Shown here in pieces: positions 4,601-30,254 of a DNA stretch of 64,000 nt. Every line of letters begins with the position of its first letter. The stretch's first letter is position 1. The notes under the pieces were generated by a model that was not told the origin of the DNA, did no database searches, and was given only the letters and a program-made list of their open reading frames with translations. The position numbers and the translations under genes were made by a program. Source of the stretch: Macrostomum lignano (lineage: Eukaryota); assembly GCA_002269645.1 (NCBI GenBank), contig NIVC01003380.1, positions 1-64,000 of the forward strand. Direction: 5' to 3'.

Positions 4601-4906
4601 CAAATTGCTGCTGGTCAATTCAAAGGCGAAACAGTTTTGTTGCCGCGCGTACCATTGATACCAAGTAATTTGGATCTACCTGTTAAGTTCAGAAGGCTAC
4701 AATTTCCTCTACGACCCTGTTTCTGCATGACTATTCATAAAGCACAAGGCCAATCCCTTGACGTAGTTGGAATTGACCTTGCAGGTAGCTGTTTTGCGCA
4801 TGGACAGCTCTACACTGCACTTTCCAGAGCAAAAAATGTTTGTAATGTTCGAGTTCGAATGTGCGGCGAAAGAACCAAAAATATCGTTTACCCAGAAGTT
4901 TTTTGA
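1670..4906 (+). pseudogene. Helitron RepHel (HUH Rep plus PIF1-family SF1B helicase), disrupted
   Basis: Basic N-terminus (MPKRKRK...). HUH motif EYQKRGLPHVHILLW and motif YIIKYLLK. Helicase motifs DAPAGTGKT, IVWDEISM, CGDFRQLLPV and TIHKAQGQSL. One intron at about 4071-4150 (EFLLR|VGEG). Split by frameshifts near 1850, 2130, 2810 and 3275 and by an in-frame TAA at 4049-4051. Confidence 0.92.
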
Positions 4907-9336: not shown

Positions 9337-11274
9337 TTATCTCAACCGGTCCGGTTTCTGCAATTTGTCTCTGTCCCTTAGTCGTCTAGGTTCTTTAGCC
9401 GATGTGTCAGTGCTCTTGCCACGAGTTCCGTCTGAGTCGGTTGTCTGTGGTTCGTCCTGCACGGGCACGCTTTGGGCTGCTGGATTTGAGATGTCCTCAC
9501 TCTGCATTTGCTCACGAGCCAAGTCAGTCTGATCGTCCTGATGCCTCTTCATGATTGGTGGAATTCGGGTGGGAAGAACGTCTGTCTTGACAATTTGATC
9601 AACGTGCCTCTTCCAGATTTGCCCGTTGACCTGCAGTCTGTAAGACATTGGTCCTGTGCGGGTGACCACCTCGGCAGGAATCCATCTGTTCTCTTTCTCC
9701 CTTCTGAAATCAAGCGTCAGAAGTTTTTCTCCCTCCTGGAACTCATGCCTCACTGATTTTCCATCGCGCTTGAGAACAGGAACGATTGGCGATGCGAAAT
9801 CCGATGCCTTCACCTTCGTGATGATTCCTTGGGCTTGCAAACTCTTGAGCTCGTCCTCAATGAGACCTTTGATTGCAAATGGAACTGGCCGACTTTTGAA
9901 ATACTTTGGTATTGAATTCTCCTTCAGCACTATATTGGCCTTCAATCCTTCAATGGTTCCCAATGTCTCAGCAAACACTTGCTCATGCCTCCTTACCAAT
10001 AGATCTATAGGCTGGACTAATGTGGTCACGTTCACACTCGCAAACTTGTCCCAGTCAATCTTGATCTTAGAAAGCCAGTCGCGTTCAAGCTGATTTACTC
10101 GTTCTCCTTTGCCATCAGTACAGGCAATTGGTAAAGCCTGACGTTGTGGCTAACCACGTCAATTGTTGCATCACCTAATACTGGGATTGAGTGATCCGTG
10201 TAGCTGGACAACCTTATGGTAGTCCTTGAAAGCTTCAGGCCAAGTTGCTTGCTGGTCTTCTCGTTGATCAGGGTTTTATCCACACCAGTATCCACTTGAA
10301 ATCTTACAGCTTTTCCGTTCAGTTCCAGTTCGCACTCGTATGGTGGAGAAGTGACATGCGCGACCTGTCCAGTCGAGCACACTGTGACTTCAAAGCACCC
10401 CTGTGGTGTCCCTGACTCGTACAGTTTGAGTCCCTGCTGTCTGAGCTGGTTGAACTAGTGCATAGTGCACTCTGCCGTGTCTCTTATGTCTGGACGAGCT
10501 GAGTTTCTTTTGCTTTCCACCTCCGGAATCTTTAGTCCTGTCCTTTGTGCGGCAGGCATCACTTTTATGTCCCACTCGACCGCACTTGCTGCACGTCTTG
10601 CTACGGTAGGGGCAGTTCTTTGCCCAGTGATCTTGTGCATTGCAGCGGAAGTATCCAGATTGATTATTTCTGTTGTTCTTCTCTGACAAGCCGTCTGTCA
10701 GATTTTTACTGGCTCTTGAAGACTTCACCGCCTGGATTGCACCGGTTGACAAAATTGTCACCACACCTCTTTACGCTGCTTCTATCGCAGTCGCAAGAGT
10801 AAGTGCTCCAGTTAGTGTCAGTGTGTCTTCTTGCAACAGACGCTGCTGTGTCAGGCGATTCCTTAGGCCGACAACGAACCTGTCTCTCAGTGCCTCGTCC
10901 AAGAATTCATTAAAACCACACGTGGCAGCCAACTTCCGCAGACTTGCGATGAAATTGCTCACATTTTCTCCTTCATGTTGGGCTCTGCTATGGAAGTTGA
11001 ATCTCTCGACAACGATCTTAGGCCTTGGGTTAAAATGCTCCCCCAGGGCCTTGACTTGATCGTCGAAGTTCACATCCTTGGGCTTCTTTGGTGACAGCAG
11101 GTTGCGGAGCAATTGATAGCAGTCATTACTAATCACTGTAATCATATTTTCTGACTTATGTGCCTCCTCGGTCACTTTGTTTACGACGAGAAACTGCTCG
11201 AGTTGTTCTTTATAAGCTTCCCATTGCTCCGGTTTAGCCACGTCGAACTCTCCGATTTTTACACTCGTCGCCAT
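9337..11274 (-). pseudogene. gag-pro-(deleted pol) of the LTR element
   Basis: Gag MATSVKIGEFD...ERFNFHSRAQHEGE...LRDRFVVGL. Knuckles CNAQDHWAKNC and CSKCGRVGHKSDAC. Protease RFQVDTGVDKTLI. RT start FASPIVPVLKRDGKSVR joined directly to HEFQEGE...WIPAEV...YRLQV..WKRHVDQI. Premature stop at 10771-10773 and frameshifts. Confidence 0.9.
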
Positions 11275-11531
11275 TGTTATGTCCTTTTCTTCTGCTTCTA
11301 TACCGCCTATTGCCTCCAGGCTACCATCTGACATCAAAGTCAAGTCGAAGCATTATTTAAAATACGAGCTGTTCACAAGCTTTATTTGCCTCTAGCCAGC
11401 GCACGTCTTGCTTGCCCTTTGTAATACTGTTAACCTTCGGCTCTTAAAGAAATAAAAGATTGTACCCTAGACTATAGACAAAAGAAGGGAAGCATTAGTG
11501 CGTTTGCTAAACCAAAAGTCCATGCACAACA
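11275..11531 (-). repeat. 5' LTR (257 bp)
   Basis: Direct repeat of 9059-9318. Followed on the minus strand by PBS TGGCGACGAG, complementary to the 3' end of tRNA-Ser(GCU), which overlaps the gag ATG. Confidence 0.92.
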
Positions 11532-13164
11532 GGCGCGACGGTGGGTTAGAGCCTGATGTCCAAGGCCAAGTCAAAAAAGTCCAATGTGAAGACCCAAAAC
11601 CCAGAGACTTGGACCTTTGGCTTCTCATAATGCTAAAGTCAGGAAAGTCGTTCAGGAGTCAGTTGAACGAAAAAGCTGTATACGCCTTGTTTTACAGCAA
11701 GCCACAGGTATTTGAGCATGCTGGAAAGGCAGCATGCTTGTTGTTGGACTACACTTTGCATCGTGGCGGGTGCGGCACAGATGATACAGTGTACCTATAT
11801 GGCTTATTTCAAACCATTAGTTGTATTGTTAATATTGGTTTCAGTTATGTAAAAATTGTATGCATAATTCATTTTTTCACAGGCAATTATTAAGTCATTT
11901 TAAGTGACAATGTGCTCCCAGCAGATGCCTAGCTGTCAGAATAACGAGACGCTGCAAATGCGCAAAGTTACAATGGATGGTGCCACCTATCGGGACTAAT
12001 CCATATAAGCAGCTACGAGTACTTGATCGAGCTGGTAAGCTATATTACAGCGGCGACCAATCTTGTGGCCTATGGTAGTATCATGCCCTTGTCCTCTTTG
12101 CAAACATCTCGTGCCATACTACTATTAGAAACTGTTAGAAACTGATATGATACCAGTAGAAAAAAGTAAAAGTACATACAAAAGTACATTAACTATCAAT
12201 AGGAGAACCTATGCTAGGTATTACCCTAGCACAACTTGGTGACAGTTGTAGGACATTTATTAGTAAGAGCAATTAGCATTGTTATAACATTTATGACATT
12301 GATAGTGAGAGTGCATTAATAATAGTATAATACTATATAATAGTTCTAATAGTTTACTTATTTTTATGCTTCTTAGAAAACTCTATTTAAAATACACACT
12401 AAAAAACAAATCATTTATCTTTTGTTTAAATGTTGTGAGTTATAAAAATATTTGTCACAAATATTTTTTGTTTGAAAAAATAAGAAATCTTAGACTTAAG
12501 TATAAATAGGAGCCTAGAAGAGGCCAAGAAAAATAAATTGTGTTAACTTGTTTCCTTCGTATTACAGTTCTGCAAGCTAAATAACTTGCTCTGAATATAT
12601 TTGCTAGATTGCAGTATTCAAAAAGCCTTACTCATTTTCTAGAGTATTAAGCCCCTCATTGGGAGTATCAGAAACTGCTAAGAGCGAGAATTGCCTCAGG
12701 GAAAGAAAGCACTATAGAGTTGTAAGATCGCCTCAGGGCAGGAAAAGTGCCTCAGGGAAGGAAAAGCACCTCAGCTCAGGATGGAATTCTTGCTCGGGGG
12801 TAGGAAAATGCGCGCGCATATTTTTGGAGCAGCGCGCAAGTGCGCACGCCCCATAATCAGGAAGGTGGCACAGTGTGCGCCGGAATAATTTTTGGGACGA
12901 TTTGTGCGCTGTCTATGCGCCATTTGTGCGCTGTCTGTGCGCCACTCTTCACGAGTAGAGTTTTCTAAGAAAGGCCTTCATACGAAAAGCCTTTTTAAAA
13001 TTTTACACAATAATTTCATTTTAAACAAACTTAAACTATACCTACAATTGGAGTAATGCAAAATTGACATCCTTAGCGATAATTTATACTAATTTTATTT
13101 ACTATTAATTTTAAAGAAGCAAAAAGTTTACCACTGACTTTCTAGACTATACAAATCTCCTTTA

Positions 13165-13330
13165 TCTCTACATATAAATCAAAACTCTGTCTGTGTGTGT
13201 GTGTGTGTGTGTCTGTGTACAAATTTGATCGCTATGGACTCCCAAACCACTCAACCAAATTACACCAAACTTTACACCCACCCTAAACTTACTACCGAGA
13301 ATGTCTTAGGCTACCTTTAAATTTCCTAGA
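13165..13330 (+). mobile_element. Probable non-autonomous Helitron 5' end
   Basis: A|TCTCTACATATAAATC start, (TG)n microsatellite, then AACCACT...ACCAAATT..ACCAAACTT. Layout resembles the heads at 1028 and 6917. No 3' hairpin or CTAG found. Confidence 0.45.
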
Positions 13331-14087
13331 CTCAAGTCTTCCTGCCTAAAAGTACAAAAAACTGCTCAAAATGCGCAATTTTTTCACTTAATCCTCCATG
13401 GCGCCGCTCCACTTCTACCAATTCTCTTCAAATTTGACACAGATAATCTTAAACTATTTTGGCACAATCATGTAAAAATTGTAAAAGTTAATCCTGAGCG
13501 GTGTTGTGCACTTTTAAAGTTAGGCTGTTTTTTCAGCGAGACAGCCACCCCAACCTCCGCCCGCCTGCCTCTCTTTCCCGATCTGGGCCCAGATGTGTAA
13601 AAGGGTTTTAAAATTGACTAACTTTCAGCTGCTATAAGTTTGCTCCACGTGAAGCGATTGATTTCTAACTTAACACAATTCTTCTTTGATTCATTCTGTC
13701 TAAATGTAAAGTCTCAACTCTGTATCTCAAACAGGACGCAAACTGTAAGCATGTGAAGTTTGTCTGCTTTTTCTGTTGTTTGTGCCGCTCTTTCACTCAT
13801 TCCCCCAGCTCAGACGAAGGGTCAGGCGATAGGGCTCAATGTACAGTGTTTTGGAATAACTTTTTAATAGCCTTCTCTGTACCCCCGCGAGTGGAGAGGC
13901 GTGTGGGAAGGAGAGAGTTTAGCGAGAGATTCAAACTACTGTACTCTGTATAGACAAGTCGCAGCAGTTAAACAAGGATGGCAAATCAAGGCTATGTGGG
14001 ATGGTTTGTAAAAATAGCGAAAAATTAATGAATAAACTAATTACAATGCAATCCTACTAAATTAGTTACACCATGAAAATTTTAACA

Positions 14088-15330
14088 TTATATGAGTGAG
14101 GAGAAGTGAGTGAGGAGAGAGAAGAGGAAAGAGGAGAATGAAGAGGGGAGCGAGTAGAAAGGAGAGAGTAGATCAGCGAGTAGAGGAGCGAGTGGAGAGG
14201 AGAGAGTAGATGAGCGAGTAGAGAGGAGAGAGTAGAGAGTAGAGTAGCGAGTGGAGAGGAGAGAGTAGAGGAGCGAGTAGAGAGGAAAGAGTAGAGAGTA
14301 GAGTAGCGAGTGGAGAGGAGAGAGTAGAGGAGCGAGTAGAGAGGAGAGAGTAGAGTAGCGAGTGGAGAGGAGAGAGTAGAGGAGCGAGTAGAGAGGAGAG
14401 AGTAGAGAGGAGCGAGTAGAGAGGAGCGAGTAGAGAGGAGAGTAGAGGAGCGAGTAGAGAGGAGAGAGTAGAGAGCTGCAGATGAGAGGAGAGCAGAGAG
14501 AAGAGCAGAGAGGAGTTAGTAAAGAGGAGAAATGAGAGATAAAGGAGGGAAGTGGAGAGAGAAGAGACGAGACAAGAGAGGGAGAGAGTATATAGAAGAG
14601 GGAAGAGAAGAGAAGATAAGAAAGAAGAAAGGAAAGTGAGGAGACAAAAGAGGTGAAAGAAAAGAGTACATAGGACAGAATGAGAGAACATATAAGACAG
14701 TAAAGATGACAGATGAAAGAGGGGGGTGAGCTGAGAGCAGAGACGAAAATGAACAGACGAGAGATGGGAGAGAACAGAGAACAGATGAGAGATAAGAGAG
14801 AAGAGATTATAGAGACGAGAGGAGAGACAAAGGGAGAGAGAAGTGAGTGAGGCGAGAGGAGAGAAAAGAGAATGGAAGGGAGAGAGTAGAGAGGAGAAGA
14901 AAGATAAGAGAGGAGAGATAAGAGAGAGGGGGGAAGCAGACAGAGAGGGGGGAAGCAGAGAGAGAGGGGGGAAGCAGAGAGGGGGGAAGCAGAGAGGGGG
15001 GAAGCAGAGAGAGAGGGAGGAAGCAGAGAGAAATGAAAAGAGATAAAAGAGAAGAGAAAGGAGAGATCAGAGAGCAAATAAAGACGAGAGAGAAGAGAGG
15101 TGAAGAAAAAGACAAGAGAAGAGTGGGAGGAGAGGAAAGAGAAAAGAAGAGAAAAGAGATGAGATAAGAGAGATGAAAAAGAAGAGAAATGAGGGAAGAT
15201 ACGAGAGAAGAGGGGAGAGAGGAGAGAGGAAAAAAGAGAAGAGAGGAGAGGAGAGAGAGCTCAGAGAGGAGAGACGAGGGACGAGAGAGAAGAGAGGAAA
15301 CAGAAGAGAAGATAGAAGTTTCAAAGGATC
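14088..15330. repeat. About 1.2 kb AG-rich homopurine low-complexity tract with internal tandem units
   Basis: Almost pure A/G on the + strand, with units such as GAGCGAGTAGAGAGGAGAGAGTAGA and GGGGGAAGCAGAGA. Confidence 0.95.
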
Positions 15331-16037
15331 CAATGGATGTAGGGAGAGTCAGAAGCAGAGGCCAGAGTTTGCCAATACATGTTTTAGAGTCAGACAGACA
15401 TTAATTGCCTATTTAAAGTAAAAAGCACCCCAGCCAACAATATCAATGTTTGCCTCAAATTCTAAATGTACGCGAATGTACTCCATTTTGTTTACCTCTA
15501 TCTTACTAACTAACTATTAACAAGTTTTTGTTTCAGTATGGGCTCAGTTTCAGCTCAGATTTCAGATTTCTCAGATTGGAATTCCCTGGGTTCAAATTCT
15601 GCGGGTTTCAACAGCGTGTTTTACATAAAATTGTTAATTTGCATTACAATTTTCATGCATGTCAGGGACCTTATGCGCCGCAATTATGCGCTGCATGCGC
15701 TAGGGACCTCAGTGTGTGCCATGATTGAGCGCTGCATGCGCCAGGGACTTCAGTGTGCGCCATGATTGTGTGCCAAGGACCCCTTGTGTATGCCAGAATT
15801 TTCCATGGCAAAGGCCACCTTCCTGACTATGGCGCATGCCAGTTGTAAAAAAGTCATGATGCAGGTCATGGCAGGCCCATGCACTAAAAATTAAAATTTC
15901 TAGTTTTTCAATTCTAACGCCGACATAAATTAGAAAGTTGTACTTTAAGTGTAAAATAGCTTGAACAAAAGTTTTACTAAACTTTTAAGTAACTGTTTTT
16001 GCTAAAAACTATTATTATTTGTTTTACTTTTGTTTAA

Positions 16038-16071
16038 AATTTTCCGGCGTAAAAACATCTTCTGGACTATG
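16038..16071. repeat. Orphan degenerate right TIR of the CCATAG family
   Basis: Reverse complement CATAGTCCAGAAGATGTTTTTACGCCGGAAAA resembles CCATAGTCCGGAAGGTGGCTTTTACGCCGGAA at 22650. Probably the right end of the copy whose transposase lies at 7874-12078. Confidence 0.65.
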
Positions 16072-17028
16072 AAAAATAAGAGAATTTGAGCACGTATACA
16101 CTACATGGCACATAACCATGTTGAATACATATAAAAGTCAAATCCTATCTGTGATTTTGTGGCAAACAGCTAGCTTCTTTGCAAGCGCATACGATGGACC
16201 ATAGTCAGGAAGGTGTCCGTACGCCGGAATTTTCCGGCGTACATCAGCCCCCCCCCCAAAAAAATGGCGTACAGTTTCGCGTACACGCGGTCCGAAAAAT
16301 GGCGTACAGAGTTCTTGGCGTACACAACACAGTTTTCGCATGCAAAAATCTGTCCAAAAATCGGCCTACAATATTTGCATGTGATTGGCGTAAGAACAAA
16401 CGTTTAAAAAACCTGCAAACAACCCAATTACTTCGACAAAGTATTGTATATCGTTCAATTTTAGTGAATTGGTAAATCTATTTTCATCTTTAAAACGCTG
16501 AAATTACGTAAATTTTGAATCTAATTTATTGTTAACAAAACTTTACTAAAGTTTTGTGTAAGTCAGTTATTTATTTTAACTTATTAACTAATTCTGTACA
16601 ATAATTACTTTAGTATTTTAGATTTCTTCACGTTACAACAGATGACATACAGGTAAGTTAAGATTTAAGTTGCAAATTTCGCGCATTTGCAGTTTTATTT
16701 TATTACATTTGTTAGCAATTTCGTCGTCGAGTTCGTCTTCTTCAAGTTCGTTCTTCAGACCATTCAAATTGATCTGTTCTCTCTCCTGGATTTTTGCAAC
16801 TATTATTATTGTATTTGTATATACTAATATACTGATTGCTTCGCTTGTTGTCTTGACTTGTGTTGTGTTATTGTGTAACTTGTGTGTAACTTTGTAAGCA
16901 CAATCGAATCCACAAGGAAGGAAGTGAAATATAAATATTCAGTGTTGACTCGACTGTGTTGTCGTGTTGATATAGCCAGGCTCATCGGCTCAGAAACTTT
17001 AACCATACCATTGCAAGTTGCAACACCA

Positions 17029-20000
17029 ATGGAAACTAGTGACACTGTCACTGTCACTGACACTGACACTGAGGACGAGGTCGAGGAGATGGAAGTTTCT
17101 TCTGATAATGTCAATGCTATTGATAAAGCTTTGGATTCAACTTCAAGCTCACTTAGCTCAGCTATTGATTCTAGTAAGTGTGGCCTGTTGCTGTTGAGCC
17201 TGGCTGCCTGTTTGCTAATTGCCTGTTTTCAATCTTCTTTTCTTATCTTTTATTATAAATTATAAGTTCTGAAGAAAATAAATTTTAGACAGAATATTAA
17301 ACATTGAGCTAGGGACCAATATGAATAGCCTTGATTCTCAAATTTTGCTTTTAAATATATTATGCTAATCAGCTAATGCAGCCATGCCCATAGCATACAT
17401 GATACATACAGTACAGGCTACAGGCTACAGCCTTGCCTATACTTTTGTTAACATTGACAAGTCTAGTCATTAAGTCTTAAGTCTAGTCATTCATTCATGA
17501 TGATTCATGTTATTGTTATTGATTGTCAGATTCCGACAAGTAGGCCAGTTTTTATCCAATCCAAATCCAATATATGTATATGTTCTATTTTAGTGTAGTG
17601 TAGTCAAACATCAATAAGTATAAAGTATGTATATTGTTTAATTTCACATTCTATTATTTACATGAGATCTGACTCTGACTCATACATTGATTTGATAGTG
17701 ATTGATAGGTGATAGCTGATACTGCCATACTCATACTTAACTTTATTTTATTGTTGACTTATTATAAATTTTTGACTTACTTTTCTTAGACAATACAGTT
17801 AGTTAATTAGTTTTGTATATATGTAGCAATGCAATCCAAAGCTGTAGGCTGTGCCTGTAGGTAGAATGTATGTAGCATTCAAAATCAGAGTCATCAGACC
17901 AAGACCATTTTCATTATTACCATATTATATTAATCCCCGCCCTTTCTATCTATTCTATAGCAACATTATTTTAAACCCCTTAAGTAGCCCCAATAAAACC
18001 CTTTCACTAAAACAGGTTTTTCGGCTGCTTCTACTTCATCAAAGGCAGCTGGTCCTAAGACAGGTCTTAAAGAAGGCTGGGGATTTTTTGCAACCCCAAA
18101 TCAGCTGCAGCCTATTTCTAATTCTAACAATCGCAAGCGAAAGTCTGTTAGTAATTCTGGCCCAAGTCAGTTAGAAGCCAAGCAACCCAAAAGAGTAATT
18201 GCACAGGATGTGCACTACTGTTTGTCCTGCTTAAGGGCTGGTCGAAATTTGCGAAACTGCCGAACAGTCCGTGGTCTTCCACATGATCTTAATCGGCACT
18301 GTAAGAGTCAACACCAGGGGCGCAAAGGTGTTGGACATGCACCTCCTGATTTCGCTCGAAGAGATAACCAGGAGGTTCGAAGGCTGTTGAATGAGCGTGC
18401 CCTGCAAAATGTAGCTACTGTGGAAGACGAAGAGGACGACTTGAGTGCTGAGGTTGATCAGTCTGAACAGCAGCAGCAGCAGTCATCCGATCAGCAGCAG
18501 TCATCCGATCAGCAGCAGTCATCCGATCAGCAGCAGTCATCCGATCAGCAGCAGTCATCCGATCAGCAGCAGTCATCCGATCAGCAGCAGTCATCCGATC
18601 AGCAGCAGTCATCTGATCAGCAGCAGTCATCCGATCAGCAGCAGTCATCCGATCAGCAGCAGTCATCCGATCAGCAGCAGTCATCCGATCAGCAGCAGTC
18701 ATCCGATCAGCAGCAGTCATCCGATCAGCAGCAGTCATCCAATCAGCAGCAGTCATCCGATCAGCAGCAGTCATCCGATCAGCAGCAGTCATCCGGTCAG
18801 CAGCAGTCATCCGGTCAGCAGCAGTCATCTGGTCAGCAGCAGTCATCCGGTCAGCAGCAGCAGACAGACCTGCAGTGTCGTCTACAGTTGCGACTCGAAG
18901 CTGTTGATTCAGCACCAGCTCCAGAAAACATGGCTAAGAAGATCACTGCTCTGCAAAAGGCGTTCGAGTCACAGACGCAGGAGATTGTGCAGATGAAAAA
19001 ACTGCTTGAAAATATATCCGTCAATGCTGTTGCTACATCTAAATGTAGTAAGGGCAGCAATCAAGAAAATAAGTCCAAAATCGACCTCGGCAACGATGAT
19101 GTGGCGGCCACAAATAGTTTCGCTGAGTTACTGCAGTTTGAGTTTTGTTCGCTCAAGTCGTGCGAGAATGGTGACTCGATTTTTAACTGCGTTCCCTGTG
19201 TCACGTTCCTCTGCAAGTCGAAACTGATGCCTACCAACTGTACAGCCGAGCAAATCTACAGCATTCTGTAAGTCGAATGTTTTTTATATGTACTGTATGT
19301 AGAGTCCGTTTAGACGGGATAGTCTTAAAGAAGTACTTAAGGTGTTAATGTACTGAGCTTTTCACTTTTCCAGGAACCCCACCACCACTGAAAAGAATAA
19401 GTCCTTCAGCAGAGGGCTACGACTTTCAGCCGAACGAGTCGCAGGTTTGCTAAGTGGTGTGGACGAGTTCTCCAAATTTCGCAATGAACTCGTAAACCAC
19501 TGTTCGACAAGCAAGACCCACTATTCGGCTGTGAAGGACTACCGAACCGAAGTCGTACAACAGACGGCACAAGGCAAGGTTGTGCGCACCCTTCTCCGCT
19601 GTGCTATTGCGACAATTGAAATGGCTGCTGCGGGTTCGCATTACGAGACTCTAATGAGTCTGCTCGATGCGTCTGATTGTGAAGTTGGTCAGATTGGCCA
19701 TGGCTTGTAAGTTTACCTGCAAACATATCTATAAATAATTTTATTTAAATGCAATCAGATATACTTAATAAATAATAACTTTGTCATTTCACCTACCCTC
19801 CCTCCTTACAAAGTGCATTCTGCAAAGAACTTTGGAAGTTATTAGACGCCTGCGTAAACGACGAAAGTGCAGAGTTTCTGCGGTGTCCTCTGCCTTCGAC
19901 TGGACAGCCGCCTCTGCTGACCATCACCTGCGACAAAAGCACCCCAGGCCGCACAACGAATCAGGCGGCACTCCTTCTAGCTCGCTGCGAAAATGGCGAA

Positions 20001-22273
20001 GCCGTAGCGATTCCTGCGGGTGCACCTGCTGTGTACGACTCTGCAATGCAAGCAGATGGGGAAGCCCTGGCCAAAAGACTAATGCAGACACTTAAGGTAA
20101 CCGTCACTAACGTATTATTTTTTGGACGATTGAAGGGATTCTAACAGTTTTAAACTTTAAATTAGACGAGTGCTTAATTTCATCATTTTGAATCTATCAG
20201 GTGTTGAAGACGCCCACTGCAAGCATCATGGGTATCGTCGCTGATGGCCAGTACCAAGCTGGCACATTCTGCCGCGCTATTCGGACCGAGCTCGGGGCCC
20301 CTGTCGATGACGTCGAAAAGATTCCTGTGATGTGGGATGCGGCACACTACTTGAATCTGGCCGTCACTGATGTTCGCGATGGACCTGATGGGGAGTCATT
20401 GCGCCGGTTTATAAAGCGAGCGAATTTTTTTGCTACCTATTTCAGCCATGGTCGTGGTGAGGCAGCACTGAAAGAGGCGTCAGACGGTTCAGCTCGAGCG
20501 ATGTCGCATTTCGCAGCCCAGCGTTTCACGAGCTCTGCAATCAAGTAAGTACCAGCTATTATCAATAAATAGTCTAATAAAAATGGTGATGAAAAGCGTA
20601 AATAAAAATTTATTTAATGTCCTCCCACTACGCTTCTTTTTTTAGACAGTGGTCCGCCATTGAGGCAAGTTACGCCGCTCTGCACACCGCATTTCGAGCA
20701 GAAAATCCGTGCTGCTCTGATGACGAAGAGTCGCAATATGCAATGTTCGGAAGCGACTTCGTTTTTGACTTGCTGTGCCTGCAGGACCTTTTTGGTCCAC
20801 TAGTCTCCCTGATGGAAGTGGCTCAGAACCTCCAGTTGCCTCACTGGAAGGTTTCCGTGCTGGCCGATCGGGTAGCGAAGCATTTTGCTGATCACTCAGA
20901 GGTTTTCCGAGTTGAGGATTACCCACGACTGCAGGTAAATGATTTGGGCCTATATGTAAGGGCTTAAACTATATTTAAAGGGCTTAAATTTGCGCATTCA
21001 TTTCTTTCCTACTTCACTTCAATTTTTACAGCCCTTCTATGAGTCCATCAAACCGGGAGGCTCATTCAAATCGGTCGAATTGATGGGCGGATGGCTTGTA
21101 CTGCCGGACAAGCCCACGGTGACCGCTCGAGGCAACCAACGCACCGGTAGGCCAAGCAGCAGGGTCGACTGGCAACTCCGAGAGTCCCAGGATATGGAGC
21201 GGGTAATTTTTAACTCTGAGTTTTAGCACCGCTACTGTGTAAAAGTATAAACTTCTGTCATGTCATGATTAGTGTATTAACGCACTTATATATATTTATA
21301 ATTCTCTCCAGGACCTAGTCCAGTTGGCTTCAAGCCTGCACCGCTCCTTTCTTGCGCGATTGGAGAAATGCTGCGTCAGGGATCCGTCAATTGTCCTGGA
21401 TGCAGCATCTGCCGTTAGCCTGTTGACTGCCGAGGACATCGAAGAGGCAGTCGAGAATGCAACTCATGCCGTTGAGATGAAGCACCTCGTCCGCCTTGCT
21501 GAAAAGCACGAGCGTCTCGCACCGCACGTGAAGTCGTCCCTATCACGGAAGTATTTGGAGGCTTTTATCACGACTATTCACGAGGCATTCATCTCAGGCG
21601 ACGGCCGAGATAACTGGCTCACACCTGCTGTACAGGGTCGCATTATTAAGGTCTCTGCGGAACCCCGCAAGTCAGGCGATCTGGCGCTTCGACTGCGACT
21701 GACTACAGAGCCAGGCGAGTCTGTCTGCGCCACGCTTAACGAGTCAGCAGTATATGCGGCTTTTTACAAGGACCCTCGGGTTTATTCCCGCGCTGGTCAA
21801 GCCACATGTCTGTTGCTCGACTTTGCTCTTCACCGCGGCGGCACAGGTGAGCATGAGCTAGTCTGAAAAGTTTTAGGTATGCAGAATTTTAATACTTTGT
21901 AATTATGGAAACTTTCGTTTTTTTAGAAGTGATTGTCGAATCCTACTACGCGACAATACGCTCGCAGCAAAAAATCGGCGGTCAGCTCAACGACACGCTC
22001 GAGGTAAGAATGAAGCTGCGCTGGATGCTGCTGCCAGTGGGTACCAGTGCCAATGAGCGACTCTTGGGACGAGCTGCGAAACTTTATTACACTGGCGACA
22101 GTCAAAGAAGCTTGCGGCAACACCGTGGACCACTCTTCTTCGACCCCAAAGCCCGCGCTCGCAAGAAGTATGAATCTAGCAAAGTGATTGATCGGCGCCG
22201 GGAACAGGGTAGTCGGTGTCTGTTCGTCGGAGCCGATAAGTCTCTGTCAGAATCGTTGTCTGAAAACAAATGA
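17029..22273 (+). CDS. hAT-like DDE transposase, 9 exons, about 1232 aa
   Basis: Exons 17029-17173, 18016-19267, 19374-19706, 19814-20096, 20201-20544, 20646-20934, 21032-21202, 21312-21846 and 21927-22273 splice GT-AG in phase without stops (3699 nt). RKRK NLS-like motif and zinc-finger-like CLSC...HCKSQH and CVPC...HCSTSKTH. Putative triad TCDKST, VADGQY and IVESYY, with WDAAHYLNLAV. Start codon uncertain. Confidence 0.82.
18482..18859 (+). repeat. Coding 18-bp tandem repeat, about 21 units, (SSDQQQ)n
   Basis: TCATCCGATCAGCAGCAG repeated nearly perfectly; the last four units encode SSG. Confidence 0.95.
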
Positions 22274-22649
22274 ACTTTTTAATAGGTAATTAATACATAA
22301 ATTTTAAATCTGTAAATTGCAGCGTTTTTTTGGGTCCTCAATTTTGGCGTACGCTTTTTTTGGGCTATTCAATTTTGGCGTACGTCAAAAAGCGCTTTTT
22401 TAGGGCTTTTCAATTTTGGCGTACACAACATTTTTTCTTAATTTTCATTCCGGCGTACACTGGACACCTTCCTGACTATGGACAACGGAGCGTGCACACA
22501 CCTTCTTTAAGAGTGCCCAAGTAGGCTCCTTTTCAGCGCGCAAGCGCAAACAAATTTGACAAGCACGTACAAATGCATAACAACTTTTGTGCAAGAATTC
22601 CATCTTGGCCTCAGGGCAAAGAAAATGCATAAGGCTATGACTTTTGATC

Positions 22650-23109
22650 CCATAGTCCGGAAGGTGGCTTTTACGCCGGAATTTTCCGGCGTAATTTTGC
22701 ACTCGCTGACAATCTTGGCGTACATTTGGCGTATAGAATATTCAGGTTCAACATGAAGTGTAAACAACTGGCATACAAGAAATAGAAAAGTTCAGGGCTG
22801 ATGCAATCGTGTAGTTAAATATCAATTAACCAAAGCTCTTCTGAATATAAACGGTTAACAAAACAGAAAATATTAACGAAATTTACGAGAAAAACAAAAT
22901 TAAAACAAAGAATATTAGTTTTTGGAAAAAATCAGCCGTTTTCAAGTAAATAATTATTTTTAAGTTTTAAAAAATACAAATTCTTTAAAAAGTTGGCGTA
23001 TAAACAACTTTTGACTTGGCATAAAAAAATTTTGAACTTTACGTCGGCGTAAAATTGAAAAGATACAAATTTTCACTCCGGCGTACGCCTGCCATGATCC
23101 GGACTATGG
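22650..23109. mobile_element. MITE of the CCATAG family (460 bp)
   Basis: 12-bp TIR CCATAGTCCGGA. 8-bp TSD TTTTGATC/CTTTGATC. GGCGTA subterminal repeats. Confidence 0.85.
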
Positions 23110-23228: not shown

Positions 23229-26200
23229 GGCAATCCTACACTTCCGTTCGGTAAATTATTTTCACATTTGAATTCGTACCACTGAGTCAAATGACGTTGA
23301 TTGGCAATGTGTCTATGGCCAAAAGTTTGAGCGAACAGAGTTTAAAGGGGTGTCAGTTTAAGGGAGCTGTTGCTTGTGAGCTGCTCATTATTGAGCTTCA
23401 ATTTCTCATATCTTCCAGTCTTCATTGCCATGGAGACATGTCCACACCAACACCGTGGAGGGCACATGGGCCCACGCGAAGCGCAAGATCCGCAACATGC
23501 ATGGCACGAGCGACGCTCTCTTCGATGCACACATTAAGGAATTTCTCTGGCGTCGTCTGTATCCCCAATGTCCATTTGGGGCTATCCTGTACTAGGCATT
23601 CTGGTGAGGTTTTTGAAGTTCTAAGATTAACTTTTTTTTTATTTTCTTAGATAGAGCATATATGTATGAGTAAAAGGACACCTCATTTTTGAAAATTGGT
23701 CAAATAATAAAAAAGTTATGACATTTTAATTTTTTTATTTTTTGTCCCCTTTGTAATGTATTTTTCCCATAAGGCTCTGTGACACTTTTTCACGAAACTA
23801 TCACATTTTTTTACTTTAAATTGGCATAACTTTTTTTCTACTAGATGATTTTTTTTCAGCAAGGTGTCATTTTTTTGCTTCTTTCTCATTCTATACAATG
23901 ATTATGTCCATGTTGTTTGGTTTAAATTTTGTTATAAATAAACTACTGGGAAGTATGACATAACATTGATATTTGTGGAGAAAAAATGATTTATAAAGAA
24001 TGTGTAGGATTTTTTATTGGATTTTTTACCTACTTTTTATATTTCTATCATCTCAGCCTTACAAGTTCCTTCTAGAGTGCATTAATACCTTTAATTAATG
24101 CATTAGATAATTATTAATTAATGAATTAATTAGTGAATTAATGTGTAATAAATGAATTATTTGATTAATAATATACTTATACACATCCATAGGCAATATA
24201 ACTCAAGTGCAGCTTGGACATAGTACTCAGGATATAGTTATGGTCACATTGACATGTCAATTGAAAATAGTATAATGAAAGTACTCATTGAACCAGTTCT
24301 TGTCTTCATTACAGCTGAATTCCGATTTTAACTTCGTCAATATTCAATCACCATGTCTGACTCTGAGTCAGCTAACCAGCTAACCCAGGGCCAGGTTACT
24401 GTACAAGCTGCACTGGATGTTCTCAAGTGCAGCAACCTGGAGATGCTTCTTCAGATGCTTGGCATCAGTGGCGAGACTGGTGGCGGTGCTGTGAAGCCCA
24501 ACTCGGTTGTGAAGCGCATCCAGCGCCTGAAGGTCCAGCTCGCCAGGCTCAAGAAGAATGGACAGCGAGGGGCTGCTGAAGTTCAAGCATTGCTGCACAG
24601 CCCATTTCTGACTGTGTCAATGCCAGCAGCTGCTGCACAACCTGGGCCATCTGCAGCCTTGCCCTCAGGCTCTGGTGCTGGTCCTCCAGCGTCATCCACC
24701 AGTGGCAGTGTCGGAGCTGACACTGCAGCTGTCACTGTAAGCAGTGCTGCTGATGTTGCCACAGTCAGCACTCCTTGCCAACTTCGTGTGCTGCTGCCTG
24801 GCACTGCCGCTGACGAGGCAACACCAAGAAGATCAACGTCATGTGCCAGTCCAGCGCTGTTGATTAAGCGACAGCGGCTGGATTTGTCGTCGGAGATGCT
24901 GGCACAAGAACTGTCAGGTGCAAAGGTAATTCTTTCCACTTCAATAATAATAGACTTTACTTCAATAATTAATTAATAAAAATGGCTCCTGATTTTGAAC
25001 AGTGAACTACTGATGCTCTGAGACCCTACCCATTTAAAACTGTTTTCTACACTACAGTCTGCAAGCTTCGATCTTTCGTCTGAGGTCGCCAAGCTCCTCA
25101 AGGTGGTCGAGCAGAAGGATGGCGAGATTGCACGTCTAAGAGGTGCGCTGCAACGACGGCCAACAGCGCGAGTGTTGAAGCAGCGCCTGAAGAGGTACCA
25201 AGACCGCCTGCATTCTGCCAAGTGTCAGGCTGCCACTGCAATGGCGGCCGCTGGAACTGCGCAGCGCCAAGCGGCAAAAAATTCGCATGACGTGGTGACT
25301 GCTCATGCATTTGGCCGGCTTCGCCGGCTGAACACAACACTCGAAGTGCAGCTCAAGGAGCTGAGACGGCAGGTGCAGCGCTTTCTGGGCATCGAGCGCA
25401 GGCTGAAGTTTGCCAGATCAACAATTTCAGCACTTCGGAATGACATACGCAAGGTGCATATTGCGCTTGGTGAGGCCAATGAGAAGCTACTGCAAGCTCA
25501 GCAGCCTAAACCACACGTCATTGCGACGATGGAGACCCGCCCAGCTGATGAAGGCTGCCAGGCTCTCGGTGGGCGTCGGTACACGCGCCCAGTGATCGAA
25601 GCATGTGTGCACTTGGTGCTGGCGAACCATGTGCCAGTTAAACACGTGCCTTGCGCCATCCGCACAGTCCTTGGGACTATTGCCGAATTTAACGTTGCCA
25701 ACCTTCTCCTGCCATGTCCATCGCACATCAGCATGATAACCTATGCAGTTGGCAACACCCTCGCCAAGACCGCAGCGATGGAGGAGATTCTGGGGGCGGT
25801 CGCTGACGACCGAGGCACGTCACTGAAGACCGACGGGACGTCGAAGAAGGGCCTCCACTTCGCAGAATATGAGGTTAGTGTTGTACTTTTGCTGTGATCA
25901 CTGATCAGGGCAACTGAATAGTGGATTAGCATTTGAATTTAATTGACAGCTGTCAGCAACTTTTTTGTTTTTTATAGTCCTGATCAACTTTTAGAGTTTC
26001 TGTCCTCCATTTTATTTTCATTTCCTTTTCCAACTTTTACAATGACAGGTTGACACTGGTGACGGTCGCCAGTACACTCTCGGCGTTCGCGAGGTGGAGG
26101 GCGGTACGGCTGCAATGTACGCACGCGAACTTGACGGTGCCGTCGACGACATGATTGACGCATACGTGGCACTGAAGCTGCCGGCGTCCAGTGCCGAAGA

Positions 26201-29200
26201 ACGGCTCCAGCTGAAGGCGACGCTTCTTCTGCGACTCCGGTTCATCATGACGGACCGTCACGTGGTGAACCGCAGCCTGCGTGTGATGCTGGATGAGATG
26301 CGAACCGCCCTAGCTGATCAGGTCGGCGAAGATGCTCCAGAGCCAGTGGTACCGTTGTACTGCGGCATGCATCTCATTGTTAACCTGGCAGCTGCTTCTG
26401 AGTCTGCGCTGCGTGAATTTGAAGCCTGCGTGTCTGTTGCACCAATTGGGGCTGCCGCTTTGCCAGGTTTTCACCCATCAAAGACCGAGTCTGGCACACA
26501 GCGCCTGGTGCGCACAGCCTGCAAGGCGCTTCACCGGAATGGCAACGAGCAGTGTGGCGTTGCTGGGCCTTTCGAGGCATTCATGAGTTCGAGACCCAGA
26601 GGAAGGTTCACCATGGAGGACTTTCGTGGCAACAGGTAAGTTTTTATTTTTTGTGTACTGTTTAAGTAGGTAATGTTTCGTACTACTTTAGTACTTATAC
26701 TGATGTAAAAAGGTTCTTACGTGAAAAAGATATGAAAAAGTCTTATGTGAAAAAGCTGTTTTTTTTCCAACAATTCACAGGGCTTATGTTCTGTTTCCCA
26801 ATGGCGGCAGCCTGTTCTGGCAGCGCGAGGACATCGCACAGTTTCTGGTGCAGTATCCCGCCAGCAACCGCCTGCTGTTTGCTGTTCAGGCAGACATCAG
26901 CTCTCGAGTCCTCCTGGCTGGCTGTCGAGCTCTAGGGTTCCTCGACCTCATCCTGCTCCGGCCTCTCTGGTTGCTGCTACGTAGCAAACGTGTCTCGATT
27001 GTCGACATGAACGAGAAGTACGAAGTTCTCTGCCAATGGCTGCGCTCCATTGCTCTGGCACCTGACTTCGACACAACGCAGTCAACATCTGGTCCTTTTC
27101 CCGAGCTGATGCCGCAAGTTTTACTTGGTGCAGAGGCCCAGGCCATCTGGGAGTGCGTCACGTCCGAGGAGCTGCTGGAGGCAGACAACGTCCTGACTTC
27201 CCAGGCAGTGAAGGTTGGTTTATATACCTGGATTGCTGTACTGCTGAATGATTGCATAGTGAATTAATGGAAACCTGCGTGTATGCATGCCATTTGAAAG
27301 AATGCTCACAGATGGCCTCACAAACATAAAAAATAATACAGTCTACAAATACGATTATTATTGCGTGTGTCTCACGAAAATGTTATTTTCTCTTTATTTT
27401 CTCATTTCAGACTATGTGTGCATTCATGGCCATCCTTGTCGAGCGCGAGGTGAGCGACCATTTGCCTGGAGGCCTCCTTCGCAATCTTTCGGACAAGGAC
27501 GCTCAGCTTGCTGCCTCAGCACCGAAGGACAATGTGTCCGGAGAGCGTGCATTCGGCAAGCTTGACTACGGCATCCGTGACAAGCCGAATATGCGGCCGC
27601 TCGCAAGAGAGTCGCTTGTCATCTTTGGCCAGAATGCAACCGCCAGTTGGCTGAGTGAGAAGTCGACGCAGGAGCGCAACACTCTTTTTGACCGAGCTCG
27701 GGCCATGTCCCAGAAGCTGGAGAAGCAGTGGCGTGATCAAGGCCAGGTGATCAAGGAGTACCGCCAGGCTATTCTGCAGCAGCGCTTTGCCACAAAGCAG
27801 AACAAGGAGGAGGCCCGAGCGCGTAATCTCCGGAAGGTGTACCGCGAGGCCGGCGACTATGGTGGACTTTGGGCGACTGAGCAGCAGTTGGTGCAGACTG
27901 CAGAGGCTCTCCCATCGACTGAGCTGGAGCTGGCTCTGAAGGCCCAGTTGCGCCTTCATCGAGCAATGAGTAAATAAAATTCTGCTCTGTCAATGCAATG
28001 TTGCAGTTAGATGTTTAAAAACTTACAGTTACACTTGCAAGTTGCATACAAATACAATAGATGTTATTACTCTCAACTTTTTTTCAACACAGAGACTCCG
28101 CTGCCGGCTGGCAAGAGTGGCCTGCTCAACTTCAGCTCACGTGGCGTCAAGCGTACGCTGAAGCAGCTCCAGGAGCAAGTCTCCGAGCTCATCACCATCG
28201 TCAGCGCATCAGATGCCAAGACCAACGCCGAGTCAGAGGTAGTCACTGAGGCCGAGGGCGAAATTCTCCCAACTGCCAACTGTGCAGCGAAGATCAGCGA
28301 GCTCGTGGCAAAGAAGCTGCAACCTCCTGCTCCCCGGCAGCCAAACAGACCGAATCGCGGACAGCGGCAGCAAACTGAAGGTCGTGGTCGTGAAAAGGAG
28401 ACTGACAGCGATCGTGTGGTACACAATGAGGAGGACGTGCAACGCACACTGAGCAACATCCCGGAGCTCGTCGGCACGAGAGTTGAAGTACTCTTCAGCT
28501 ACACTGATGGGGACCAGTGGGAGGAGGGTGCTGTTGTACGGCAGCTCCCAGCAGCCCGTGGTAGCCGGGACTTTCTGGACCGCCGGTTCACAATTGTCTT
28601 CGACAACTACCCCAACGAGCACTTTGAGTACGATCTGTATAAAGATTGGCTGGGGTCCACACTCAATGTTCTCTCCGATTGATTCATTGATTGATTCCAA
28701 TTGATTGTTTTGCGTGACGCCTGCATTCTAACCTCCCACACACACTGCCTCCCACACACACTGCCCCCAGCCTCACTTATTGACACCATACAATTACCAG
28801 ACAAACAAAGACCTGCTAATTGTTGTTGTATTTTTTTTCTAGCATTCATGCCCTCTACATGCCAGTTGCCAGCAGTATATAACCAAGTTGCAAGCTGTAC
28901 ATATAAGGCACAGTTGGCATAGTTCTCTGTATACCATAGTTTAAAGATTATTGCATCAGCGTTCTTTTGCATTGTGATGATAACTTCTTGCATATGATCG
29001 AACTCTAAGAGGTCCAAAATGGCCTCATCAGGCCAAGTATTTAAACAATGCAAAAAAACATCAACAGCAATCGCAATGTCCTGTTGTTACTTGCTACTTA
29101 CTGCTGGCCACTCGCTACATTTTTCATGTCATTTTGTCGAATGTTACTTTAATGCTGGTATGCTGGTGTTATATGTATATATATATATATATATATTGAT

Positions 29201-30254
29201 GTAGTGCAGTAACTTGTTGTCATACAGCTGAGCCAGCAACGTGTGTGCTTGCCGAGTGAGCAAGTAATGTGAAAATAAATAAGACTCACAGATATTCATA
29301 TATGACAGTGTGTCTATATCTGTATACATACGTATCGAAATCGTTTTTTTATTAAAAGTGTCACAGTCAAGCAATGTGCACAAATTGATAAATATGATTA
29401 CAATGCAAATTGGAGAAAGATGCTGCACACGAGTTGATCAATGGTTGTGCTACCGGATCCAGGGCCAGGGTGGTCTGAAATGCAACGTAGGGTGGTTTAC
29501 TTTGAATCAGTCGCGCGTTGTTGCGCGTTAAGATAGCTCCAAAATTATTTTTGCATCTTATTCACCATGAAATCCTACGTAAAAAACATCGTGTCACCAC
29601 CCTGTCACCAGTCTTGTTTCGAGTCAAAAATTTTAGTTGAAGACTTTGGACTAATATTTATAGAAGAAAAATATCTCAATTTTCTTTGCATTGCAGAAGA
29701 AATATATTCCGTAACTATTAATCTTTGTTTTACTGAAAACCGCTTATCAAAAAAAGCACTCGTTTTGATGCAATTCAAATTTCTGTCGGTCACTTAATTT
29801 TCCCGTGTTGTCACAGTTTCCAAAGCATGGTGAATTTGTTTGTTTTTCAAATTACCGTAGCTTCACTATTTGACATTGTAGGAACCTCCAAGTAGTCTCA
29901 AATTAAAGCTTAAATCTCTCTCTTCAGGACATATATTTCCGTTTTTCTTAACTCTCTTGGTTTTCTAGTTTTTTTATCATATGAAGTTGGTATCATTTAG
30001 CTCTTTTTAGCAGATTTTGCTCGGCACGCACAGGTCACGTGACCCTCACCAGAATGCCTACCTGTACTGGATTGGACATTACTATCCATTGTAGACACCT
30101 TAATGACCTGCAGACACACTCTAAGTGACTATGCGCTCTAACAGACTGCTACCATGTTCCACTGTTTTAGTTTTGTTTGGTTACATTGTTATTTACCACG
30201 CCTGTTCAAAATTCAATGTCAAAATAATTTACCGAACGGAAGTGTAGGATTGCC
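23229..30254 (+). mobile_element. Full-length DNA transposon with GGC termini and 9-bp TSD (hAT/MULE-type DDE group), 7026 bp
   Basis: TIR GGCAATCCTACACTTCCGTTCGGTAAATTATTTT(C/G)ACATT of about 40-45 bp at both ends. Perfect 9-bp TSD TATAGACAC at 23220-23228 and 30255-30263. Confidence 0.93.
24353..28682 (+). CDS. DDE transposase with coiled-coil N-terminus and C-terminal Tudor-like domain, 6 exons, about 1185 aa
   Basis: Exons 24353-24925, 25058-25873, 26049-26635, 26781-27213, 27411-27969 and 28093-28682 splice in phase without stops (3558 nt). Putative triad KTDGTSK, MTDRHVVN and SGERAFG, with the CxxH motif YCGMH. Confidence 0.83.

Follow-up and report, generated by a model that had tools for sequence, protein, structure and literature searches.

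The superfamily of hAT DNA transposons, which includes elements of the Hermes, Ac and Buster/Charlie types, is marked by 8-bp target site duplications (TSDs), short terminal inverted repeats (TIRs) and short subterminal repeats that are asymmetrically arranged. A single transposase carries an N-terminal zinc finger and an RNase H-like DDE domain that is split by a large helical insertion. Within this domain a C/DxxH-LNL block follows the second Asp, an R-aromatic-x-S block stands 60 residues further on, and a Glu is located near the C-terminus. The termini of hAT elements conform to the motif YARNG (PMC3014272). With the exception of the terminal motif, all of these features have an observed or predicted counterpart in a 6,283-bp transposon of the flatworm Macrostomum lignano, located at positions 16199-22481 of a 64,000-nt stretch of contig NIVC01003380.1 (assembly GCA_002269645.1), referred to here as the window. 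It is likely that this transposon is an autonomous cut-and-paste element of a deeply divergent hAT-like lineage, a lineage which resembles hAT in its fold, its TSDs, the architecture of its ends and the order of its motifs, yet lies outside every hAT sequence model applied. An earlier note on this DNA had suggested, as one option, a little-studied hAT subgroup, and this comes close to the conclusion reached here. The novelty of the lineage is provisional; the literature on hATm, hATx, hATw and Novosib, together with searches for the TIR strings, yielded nothing that names the family.

The element is delimited by 20-bp TIRs (CCATAGTCAGGAAGGTGTCC) that are 100% complementary, just as the earlier note had described them, with inverted similarity running further inward through GTACGCCGGAAT when a 3-nt indel is given. 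The outermost 17 nt of the TIR, its tip, are found at five places in the window, where shuffled sequence would lead one to expect 0.10, and are identical to the first 17 nt of the TIR of a further M. lignano element (locus L004, 7421-13438; assembly GCA_002269645.1; termini CCATAGTCAGGAAGGTGGCAG). The same 17 nt also had 76 single matches in metagenomes, on unrelated contigs from soil, gut and marine samples; the similarity extended no further in any of them, and they were dismissed as chance. Internal to the TIRs, the window contains 14 copies of the subterminal motif GGCGTAC where 2.9 would be expected, and 12 of these fall within the transposon or the adjacent miniature inverted-repeat transposable element (MITE). 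The outer 125 bp on the left contain five copies and the outer 136 bp on the right contain four, and the repeats keep the same absolute orientation at both ends, in addition to an inverted, TIR-proximal copy.

Ends of this kind are found well beyond the window. Perfect 8-bp TSDs flank the L004 element (GACATCAA), an element of the octocoral Paramuricea clavata (L006; termini CCAGGGTGCATTCC, TSD TCTATAGC) and two elements on metagenome contigs (L001 and L003; termini CCAGGGTGCATT..., TSDs GACATACA and TGGAAATA, respectively), while at three other loci (L002, L005 and L007) no TIR or TSD was found by a simple scan. As CC...GG lies immediately inside the direct repeats in each of the four perfect cases, the CC...GG ends are real and constitute a family trait; a start at CA, with the outer C/G counted as flank, is ruled out on the same grounds. 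Flatworm copies end in CCATAG and cnidarian-type copies in CCAGGG, so that, read from position 2, the latter (CAGGG) fit YARNG and the former (CATAG) do not. Subterminal GGCG(T/C)(A/G) repeats are kept from cnidarian to flatworm copies. GGCGTA or GGCGTG repeats at both ends, together with a palindrome inside the left TIR, characterise all elements of these four loci and of the window except the L004 element and its derivative in the window, which carry GGCGCAC, one base off GGCGTAC. Two Macrostomum subfamilies can be recognised in this way, having the 17-nt tip in common, transposases that are about 45% identical and repeats of either GGCGTAC or GGCGCAC, which suggests that it is the subterminal repeat that determines how ends are recognised, the tip being common to both. 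With regard to the target, position 4 of the TSD is A in six of seven insertions (window, L001, L003, L004 and L006), and positions 4-5 read AT or AC; this A may reflect a central target preference, for which the sites are too few to judge.

The transposase gene was rebuilt as 9 exons separated by 8 GT-AG introns, giving a coding sequence of 3,699 nt that encodes 1,232 amino acids and contains one, terminal, stop codon; the nine-exon, in-phase model of the earlier note is reproduced exactly. GC content amounts to 50-60% in the exons (41% in exon 1) and 27-35% in the introns. None of the eight intron lengths is a multiple of 3, and retention of any one intron leads to an early stop. Alignment to M. 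lignano proteins and to intronless relatives shows junctions 3 to 8 (exons 3-9) to be seamless, with neither gap nor overlap, and is uninformative for the exon 2/3 junction, where exon 2 is misaligned by its own repeat. Exon 1 is the least certain exon, finding no homology in the alignment with relatives, and is required because exon 2 offers no ATG upstream of the zinc finger. The eight introns of the flatworm copies are themselves a departure from hAT elements. The L004 element of M. lignano is also multi-exon, with two intron positions (window residues ~577 and ~1117) apparently in common with the window copy. In the cnidarian-type relatives (L001, L002, L003, L005 and L007) the transposase is one uninterrupted open reading frame (ORF); the introns therefore look like a feature of the flatworm lineage and not like a regulatory design common to the family.

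Near-invariant columns of the family correspond, in the window protein, to D617, D686, W716-D717-x-x-H720, QRF780xSS, W788, W853 and E1122. Asp is present in 34 of 35 relatives at the D617 column, in 29 of 29 at D686 and in 29 of 30 at D717; His occupies the H720 column in 30 of 31, Phe the F780 column in 27 of 27 (the block reading QRF(A/T)SS) and Glu the E1122 column in 22 of 23. Towards the N-terminus, C117 and C120 of a CxxC...HxxxxH finger are invariant in the family. The two strings singled out by the earlier note, WDAAHYLNLA (residues 716-725) and VIVESYY (residues 1119-1125), are indeed present and fall on near-invariant columns. Its reading of them, that canonical hAT proteins carry CxxH and that DxxH is typical of P elements, was inaccurate, given that the C/DxxH signature is common to five superfamilies and DxxH does not identify a P element (PMC9587614). 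WDAAHYLNL carries the hAT C/DxxH signature, and hhalign places AHxLNL on the CACHILNL of Ac-type proteins. The spacing of the motifs is similar as well, D-69-D-34-H-60-F in the window protein versus D240-66-D306-38-H344-60-W404 in the Ac type. From F780 to E1122 there are 342 residues versus 253 in Ac, the insertion domain being approximately 90 residues longer.

The overall fold was approached through AlphaFold2 models of two homologues, P0005 (34% identical to the window protein; mean predicted local distance difference test score, pLDDT, 74.7) and P0001 from M. lignano (44% identical; pLDDT 70.3). When compared with solved structures by Foldseek, the top five PDB matches of P0005 are all Hermes (E-values 8.5e-5 to 2.2e-3, probability 1.00, template modelling (TM) score on the target 0.55-0.60, ~630 aligned columns), as are the top 12 of P0001 (E-values 1.5e-5 to 5.2e-4). 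Hermes is the top match, with a probability of 1.00, in both independent models, in agreement with the hAT-like transposase that the earlier note had placed between real TIRs. The next transposase after Hermes is ISCth4, by its PDB titles a member of the IS256 family, with a TM score of 0.18-0.26 versus 0.5-0.6 for Hermes; neither model has the P element transposase, RAG1 or Transib among its best 50 Foldseek matches. The modelled core follows the RNase H-like order strand-strand-strand-helix-strand-helix-strand, with D617 just past the first core strand in the P0005 model, and continues into a long, mainly helical insertion and then a Glu-bearing helix.

The family to which this protein belongs is large. 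A database search with the window protein returned seven relatives, five of them from M. lignano (42-51% identity, hypothetical or oddly named) and two encoded by ORFs without introns on metagenome contigs of Mb scale (30-34% identity). With a profile, 72 further proteins were added, some of them from P. clavata and from the jellyfish Rhopilema esculentum. When the profile was run exhaustively against 1.84 billion cluster representatives, 1,796 of them matched at E<=1e-3, and 208 still did so at E<=1e-30, these ~1,800 family clusters being defined at 50% identity. Where members are named at all, they are labelled hypothetical or after unrelated domains. For example, the M. lignano proteins P0001, P0003, P0004, P0365 and P0366 carry UniProt names that refer to SET, SWIM-type, HECT or DUF4371 domains. 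In those of the sequences that were scanned, Pfam did not reproduce these domains, and the names probably arose as artefacts, either from fused gene models or from other members of the clusters. The window protein itself matched no Pfam model and no PDB sequence, and its CxxC...HxxxxH finger had no Pfam BED match. Zinc-finger matches were obtained at the corresponding place in relatives, namely to Znf_SCAND3 in three members (E 8e-10 to 2e-9) or, more weakly, to zf-C2H2_12; one further relative has a weak match to the Spin-doc finger. Fingers of the Znf_SCAND3 and Spin-doc kind may be typical of Buster/Charlie-derived genes.

A number of these results, and some others, weigh against placing the lineage with hAT and are considered together here. 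At the sequence level, Pfam hAT models matched none of 42 proteins (the window protein and 41 relatives) at E<=10, the C-terminal dimerisation domain PF05699 included, and no Pfam domain of any other transposase was seen in the 41 relatives either, whereas Ac-type controls do match PF05699, PF14372, PF27039 and PF27041. The family profile found nothing among PDB sequences. Furthermore, comparison by hhalign with an Ac-type profile was not significant (probability 0.8% at full length and 6.6% for trimmed cores, and not significant globally either), and the alignment was limited to AHxLNL against the CxxH block CACHILNL. This Ac-type profile comprised 16 database proteins with Pfam hAT domains, fetched with an approximate maize Ac query that served as bait only (the best matches being ~70% identical to it), and so covers the Ac clade of hAT only. 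The invariant Phe stands where W319 of Hermes, part of the RW motif, would be expected, at the same 60-residue distance from the His as TRWNS in Ac-type proteins; W319 is the conserved Trp of the hAT RW(N)S block. In total, the family has Asp for Cys, Phe for the RW Trp and ESFY for ERxFS, in a protein that is roughly double the size of Hermes or Ac. As regards the ends, the earlier note was right to call CC...GG atypical, since the CCA...TGG termini, which are seen again in relatives belonging to a different phylum, depart from YARNG (PMC3014272). The evidence for the fold is drawn from relatives of the window protein, its comparison is limited to superfamilies with solved structures (thus not Kolobok, Zisupton, Dada or Novosib), and a TM score of 0.5-0.6 at 9-10% identity shows a shared fold without proving hAT membership.

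The same observations, along with transposases of 1,000-1,230 amino acids and the sheer number of hypothetical or misnamed members, could be accommodated by a separate, unnamed superfamily or a hAT sister clade that shares with hAT only the ancient RNase H and insertion-domain fold and the C/DxxH signature. This is considered unlikely. Hermes is the leading structural match of both models, the 8-bp TSD, subterminal repeats, order and spacing of motifs and the AHxLNL block are all hAT-like, the profile test was confined to one hAT clade, and some relatives carry fingers that may be typical of Buster/Charlie-derived genes. A broader placement, with a lineage widespread in metazoans (Cnidaria and Platyhelminthes) standing as sister to every hAT clade so far described or forming an unnamed superfamily, is possible but doubtful. 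Its hallmarks would be the CCA...TGG termini, the cross-phylum GGCG(Y)(R) repeats, Phe for the hairpin Trp and the transposase length, and the lineage would have escaped the domain libraries now in use and perhaps the transposable element libraries too. An affinity with P elements, either as a hAT/P intermediate or as a P-like element with splicing-based regulation, had been raised in the earlier note. P elements and THAP9 do have 8-bp TSDs, the DxxH variant and spliced transposase genes, and the window copy has many introns. However, no P structure appears among the best 50 matches, no THAP or other P-related Pfam match and no GTP-binding insertion domain was detected here, the termini are unrelated, the signature is not peculiar to P (PMC9587614) and the cnidarian-type relatives are wholly intronless. 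Nothing supports P-like control through splicing, and a position between the two groups is extremely improbable. MULE elements make 9-10-bp TSDs, and MULE/MuDR is ruled out by the 8-bp TSD and by the far weaker match to ISCth4. Together with Kolobok, MULE/MuDR resembles the family in its DDE domain with an insertion domain and in C/DxxH (PMC9587614). Kolobok, which makes a TTAA TSD (PMC9587614), is ruled out by family TSDs that are 8 bp long and varied in sequence. Zisupton/KDZ elements, alike in having 8-bp TSDs (PMC12730594) and large transposases, could be set apart only indirectly, by the Hermes fold match and by the lack of any Pfam family on the catalytic region (provided that a KDZ model is among those scanned).

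Within the preferred hAT-like placement, it is plausible from the sequence that the 16199-22481 copy is active, with an intact ORF, all invariant residues and perfect TIRs. The alternative, that it is a recently dead or non-functional relic, intact by eye but immobile, or is mobilised only in trans, is a serious one, to which somewhat less than an even chance is given. The perfect 8-bp TSD claimed in the earlier note does not hold for this copy, for the flanks ACGATGGA and ACAACGGA are identical at only 6 of 8 positions (at least this identity at a fixed position has p ~0.004, binomial), and the two other datable copies in the window have one mismatch each. Both mismatches here are CpG transitions, a fast class of change, and are compatible with an original TSD of ACGACGGA. 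A minisatellite of 21.5 copies spans 387 bp inside exon 2, again favouring a relic; it is nevertheless in frame, and the equivalent region of the linker is disordered (pLDDT <50) in the AlphaFold models of both relatives. Exon 1 and the promoter are predicted only. On the other hand, the 20-bp TIRs are perfect and the 3.7-kb coding sequence has kept every invariant residue with no internal stop or frameshift.

By analogy with Hermes and Ac, the transposase would comprise an N-terminal CCHH zinc finger, a disordered linker and an RNase H-like DDE domain formed by D617, D686 and E1122, with D717-x-x-H720 placed after the second Asp and a large insertion domain, mostly of helices, separating H720 from E1122. 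The zinc-finger region may bind the subterminal GGCGTAC repeats, after which the transposase would oligomerise and pair the two ends of the element. Cleavage at the CC/GG tips by the DDE site would proceed probably via a hairpin on the flanking DNA, and the 3' OH ends could then attack the target 8 bp apart to generate the 8-bp TSD. The coordinates of the features described, and of the related elements in the window, are given in Table 1.

Table 1. Features of the 16199-22481 transposon and of related elements in the window.
Feature	Position	Strand	Remarks
Left TSD ACGATGGA	16191..16198	.	6/8 match to right copy
5' TIR CCATAGTCAGGAAGGTGTCC	16199..16218	+	Perfect complementarity; 17-nt tip as in L004
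TIR-proximal palindrome GTACGCCGGAATTTTCCGGCGTAC	16219..16242	.	Two inverted copies of the subterminal motif; equivalents in the same place in L006 and L001
Left subterminal GGCGTAC repeats	16236..16323	+	Copies at 16236, 16266, 16301 and 16317; putative transposase binding sites
Exon 1 (residues 1-48)	17029..17173	+	Acidic N-terminus; predicted; needed for ATG
Exon 2	18016..19267	+	CCHH-type zinc finger (C117, C120; ~18213-18311), disordered linker, second CxxC (C440, C443)
18-bp minisatellite in exon 2	18474..18860	+	21.5 copies, 98% identity, in frame; encodes (SSDQQQ)n in linker
Exon 3	19374..19706	+	Gene model and alignment of relatives
Exon 4	19814..20096	+	First catalytic Asp, D617 (19932-19934), in TCDKSTPGRTTNQA
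Exon 5	20201..20544	+	Second catalytic Asp, D686 (20243-20245, ADGQYQ); W716-D717-A-A-H720 (20333-20347, C/DxxH then LNL); QRF780xSS
Exon 6	20646..20934	+	Start of mainly helical insertion domain; W788, W853-K854
Exon 7	21032..21202	+	Gene model and alignment of relatives
Exon 8	21312..21846	+	Gene model and alignment of relatives
Exon 9	21927..22273	+	Catalytic Glu, E1122 (21938-21940), in VIVESYYATIRSQQ; stop codon 22271-22273
Right subterminal GGCGTAC repeats	22346..22458	+	Copies at 22346, 22377, 22418 and 22452
3' TIR	22462..22481	-	Perfect complementarity
Right TSD ACAACGGA	22482..22489	.	6/8 match to left copy
MITE, same subfamily, 460 bp	22650..23109	+	GGCGTA repeats; TSD TTTTGATC/CTTTGATC, 7/8
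Non-autonomous element of the sister subfamily (L004-type), 2,982 bp	12851..15832	+	Same TIR tip; GGCGCAC-type repeats; TSD CGCACGCC/CGCATGCC, 7/8
Degenerate MITE remnant, same family	15854..16071 (approximate boundaries)	.	Inverted repeats

Non-autonomous copies of the family cluster around the transposon. Since the MITE at 22650-23109 has the same tips and GGCGTA repeats, it could be mobilised by this transposase and is probably carried along by it. All three datable insertions of the window (TSDs at 16191-16198/22482-22489, 12843-12850/15833-15840 and 22642-22649/23110-23117) have imperfect TSDs, in which four of four mismatches are transitions and three of these four fall on CpG. TSDs are perfect in the copies examined from M. 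lignano and from cnidarians. Immediately downstream, at 23229-30254, lies a second intact-looking DNA transposon, whose 51-nt TIRs (GGCAATCCTACACTTCCGTTCGG...) show 88% complementarity and whose 9-bp TSD (TATAGACAC) is perfect and of MULE-like length. Its ORFs on the + strand (24353-28682) contain D...D...CxxH-like blocks (KTDGTSKKG, MTDRHVVN and YCGMHLIVNL) and have no Pfam match. Elsewhere in the window, three consecutive ORFs at 2102-4906 (+) with PIF1-like helicase, Pif1 2B and UvrD C-terminal domains are probably of Helitron type, while the region 9337-11343 (-) resembles a retroelement fragment, in which an ORF of gag-like character (weak matches to Retrotrans_gag and PNMA) adjoins one that looks pol-like and has no Pfam match.

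If the lineage proves absent from Repbase and Dfam, many invertebrate repeats and "hypothetical proteins" are at present unclassified, and one new profile could classify them. The Phe-for-Trp and Asp-for-Cys exchanges at positions of mechanistic importance in hAT would reveal what the hairpin mechanism can do without. In addition, the intact copy, its companion MITE and the sister subfamily together form a natural system for the discrimination of own from related ends by hAT-type transposases. Macrostomum is a model for transgenesis, and an endogenous, active cut-and-paste element could serve there as a tool.

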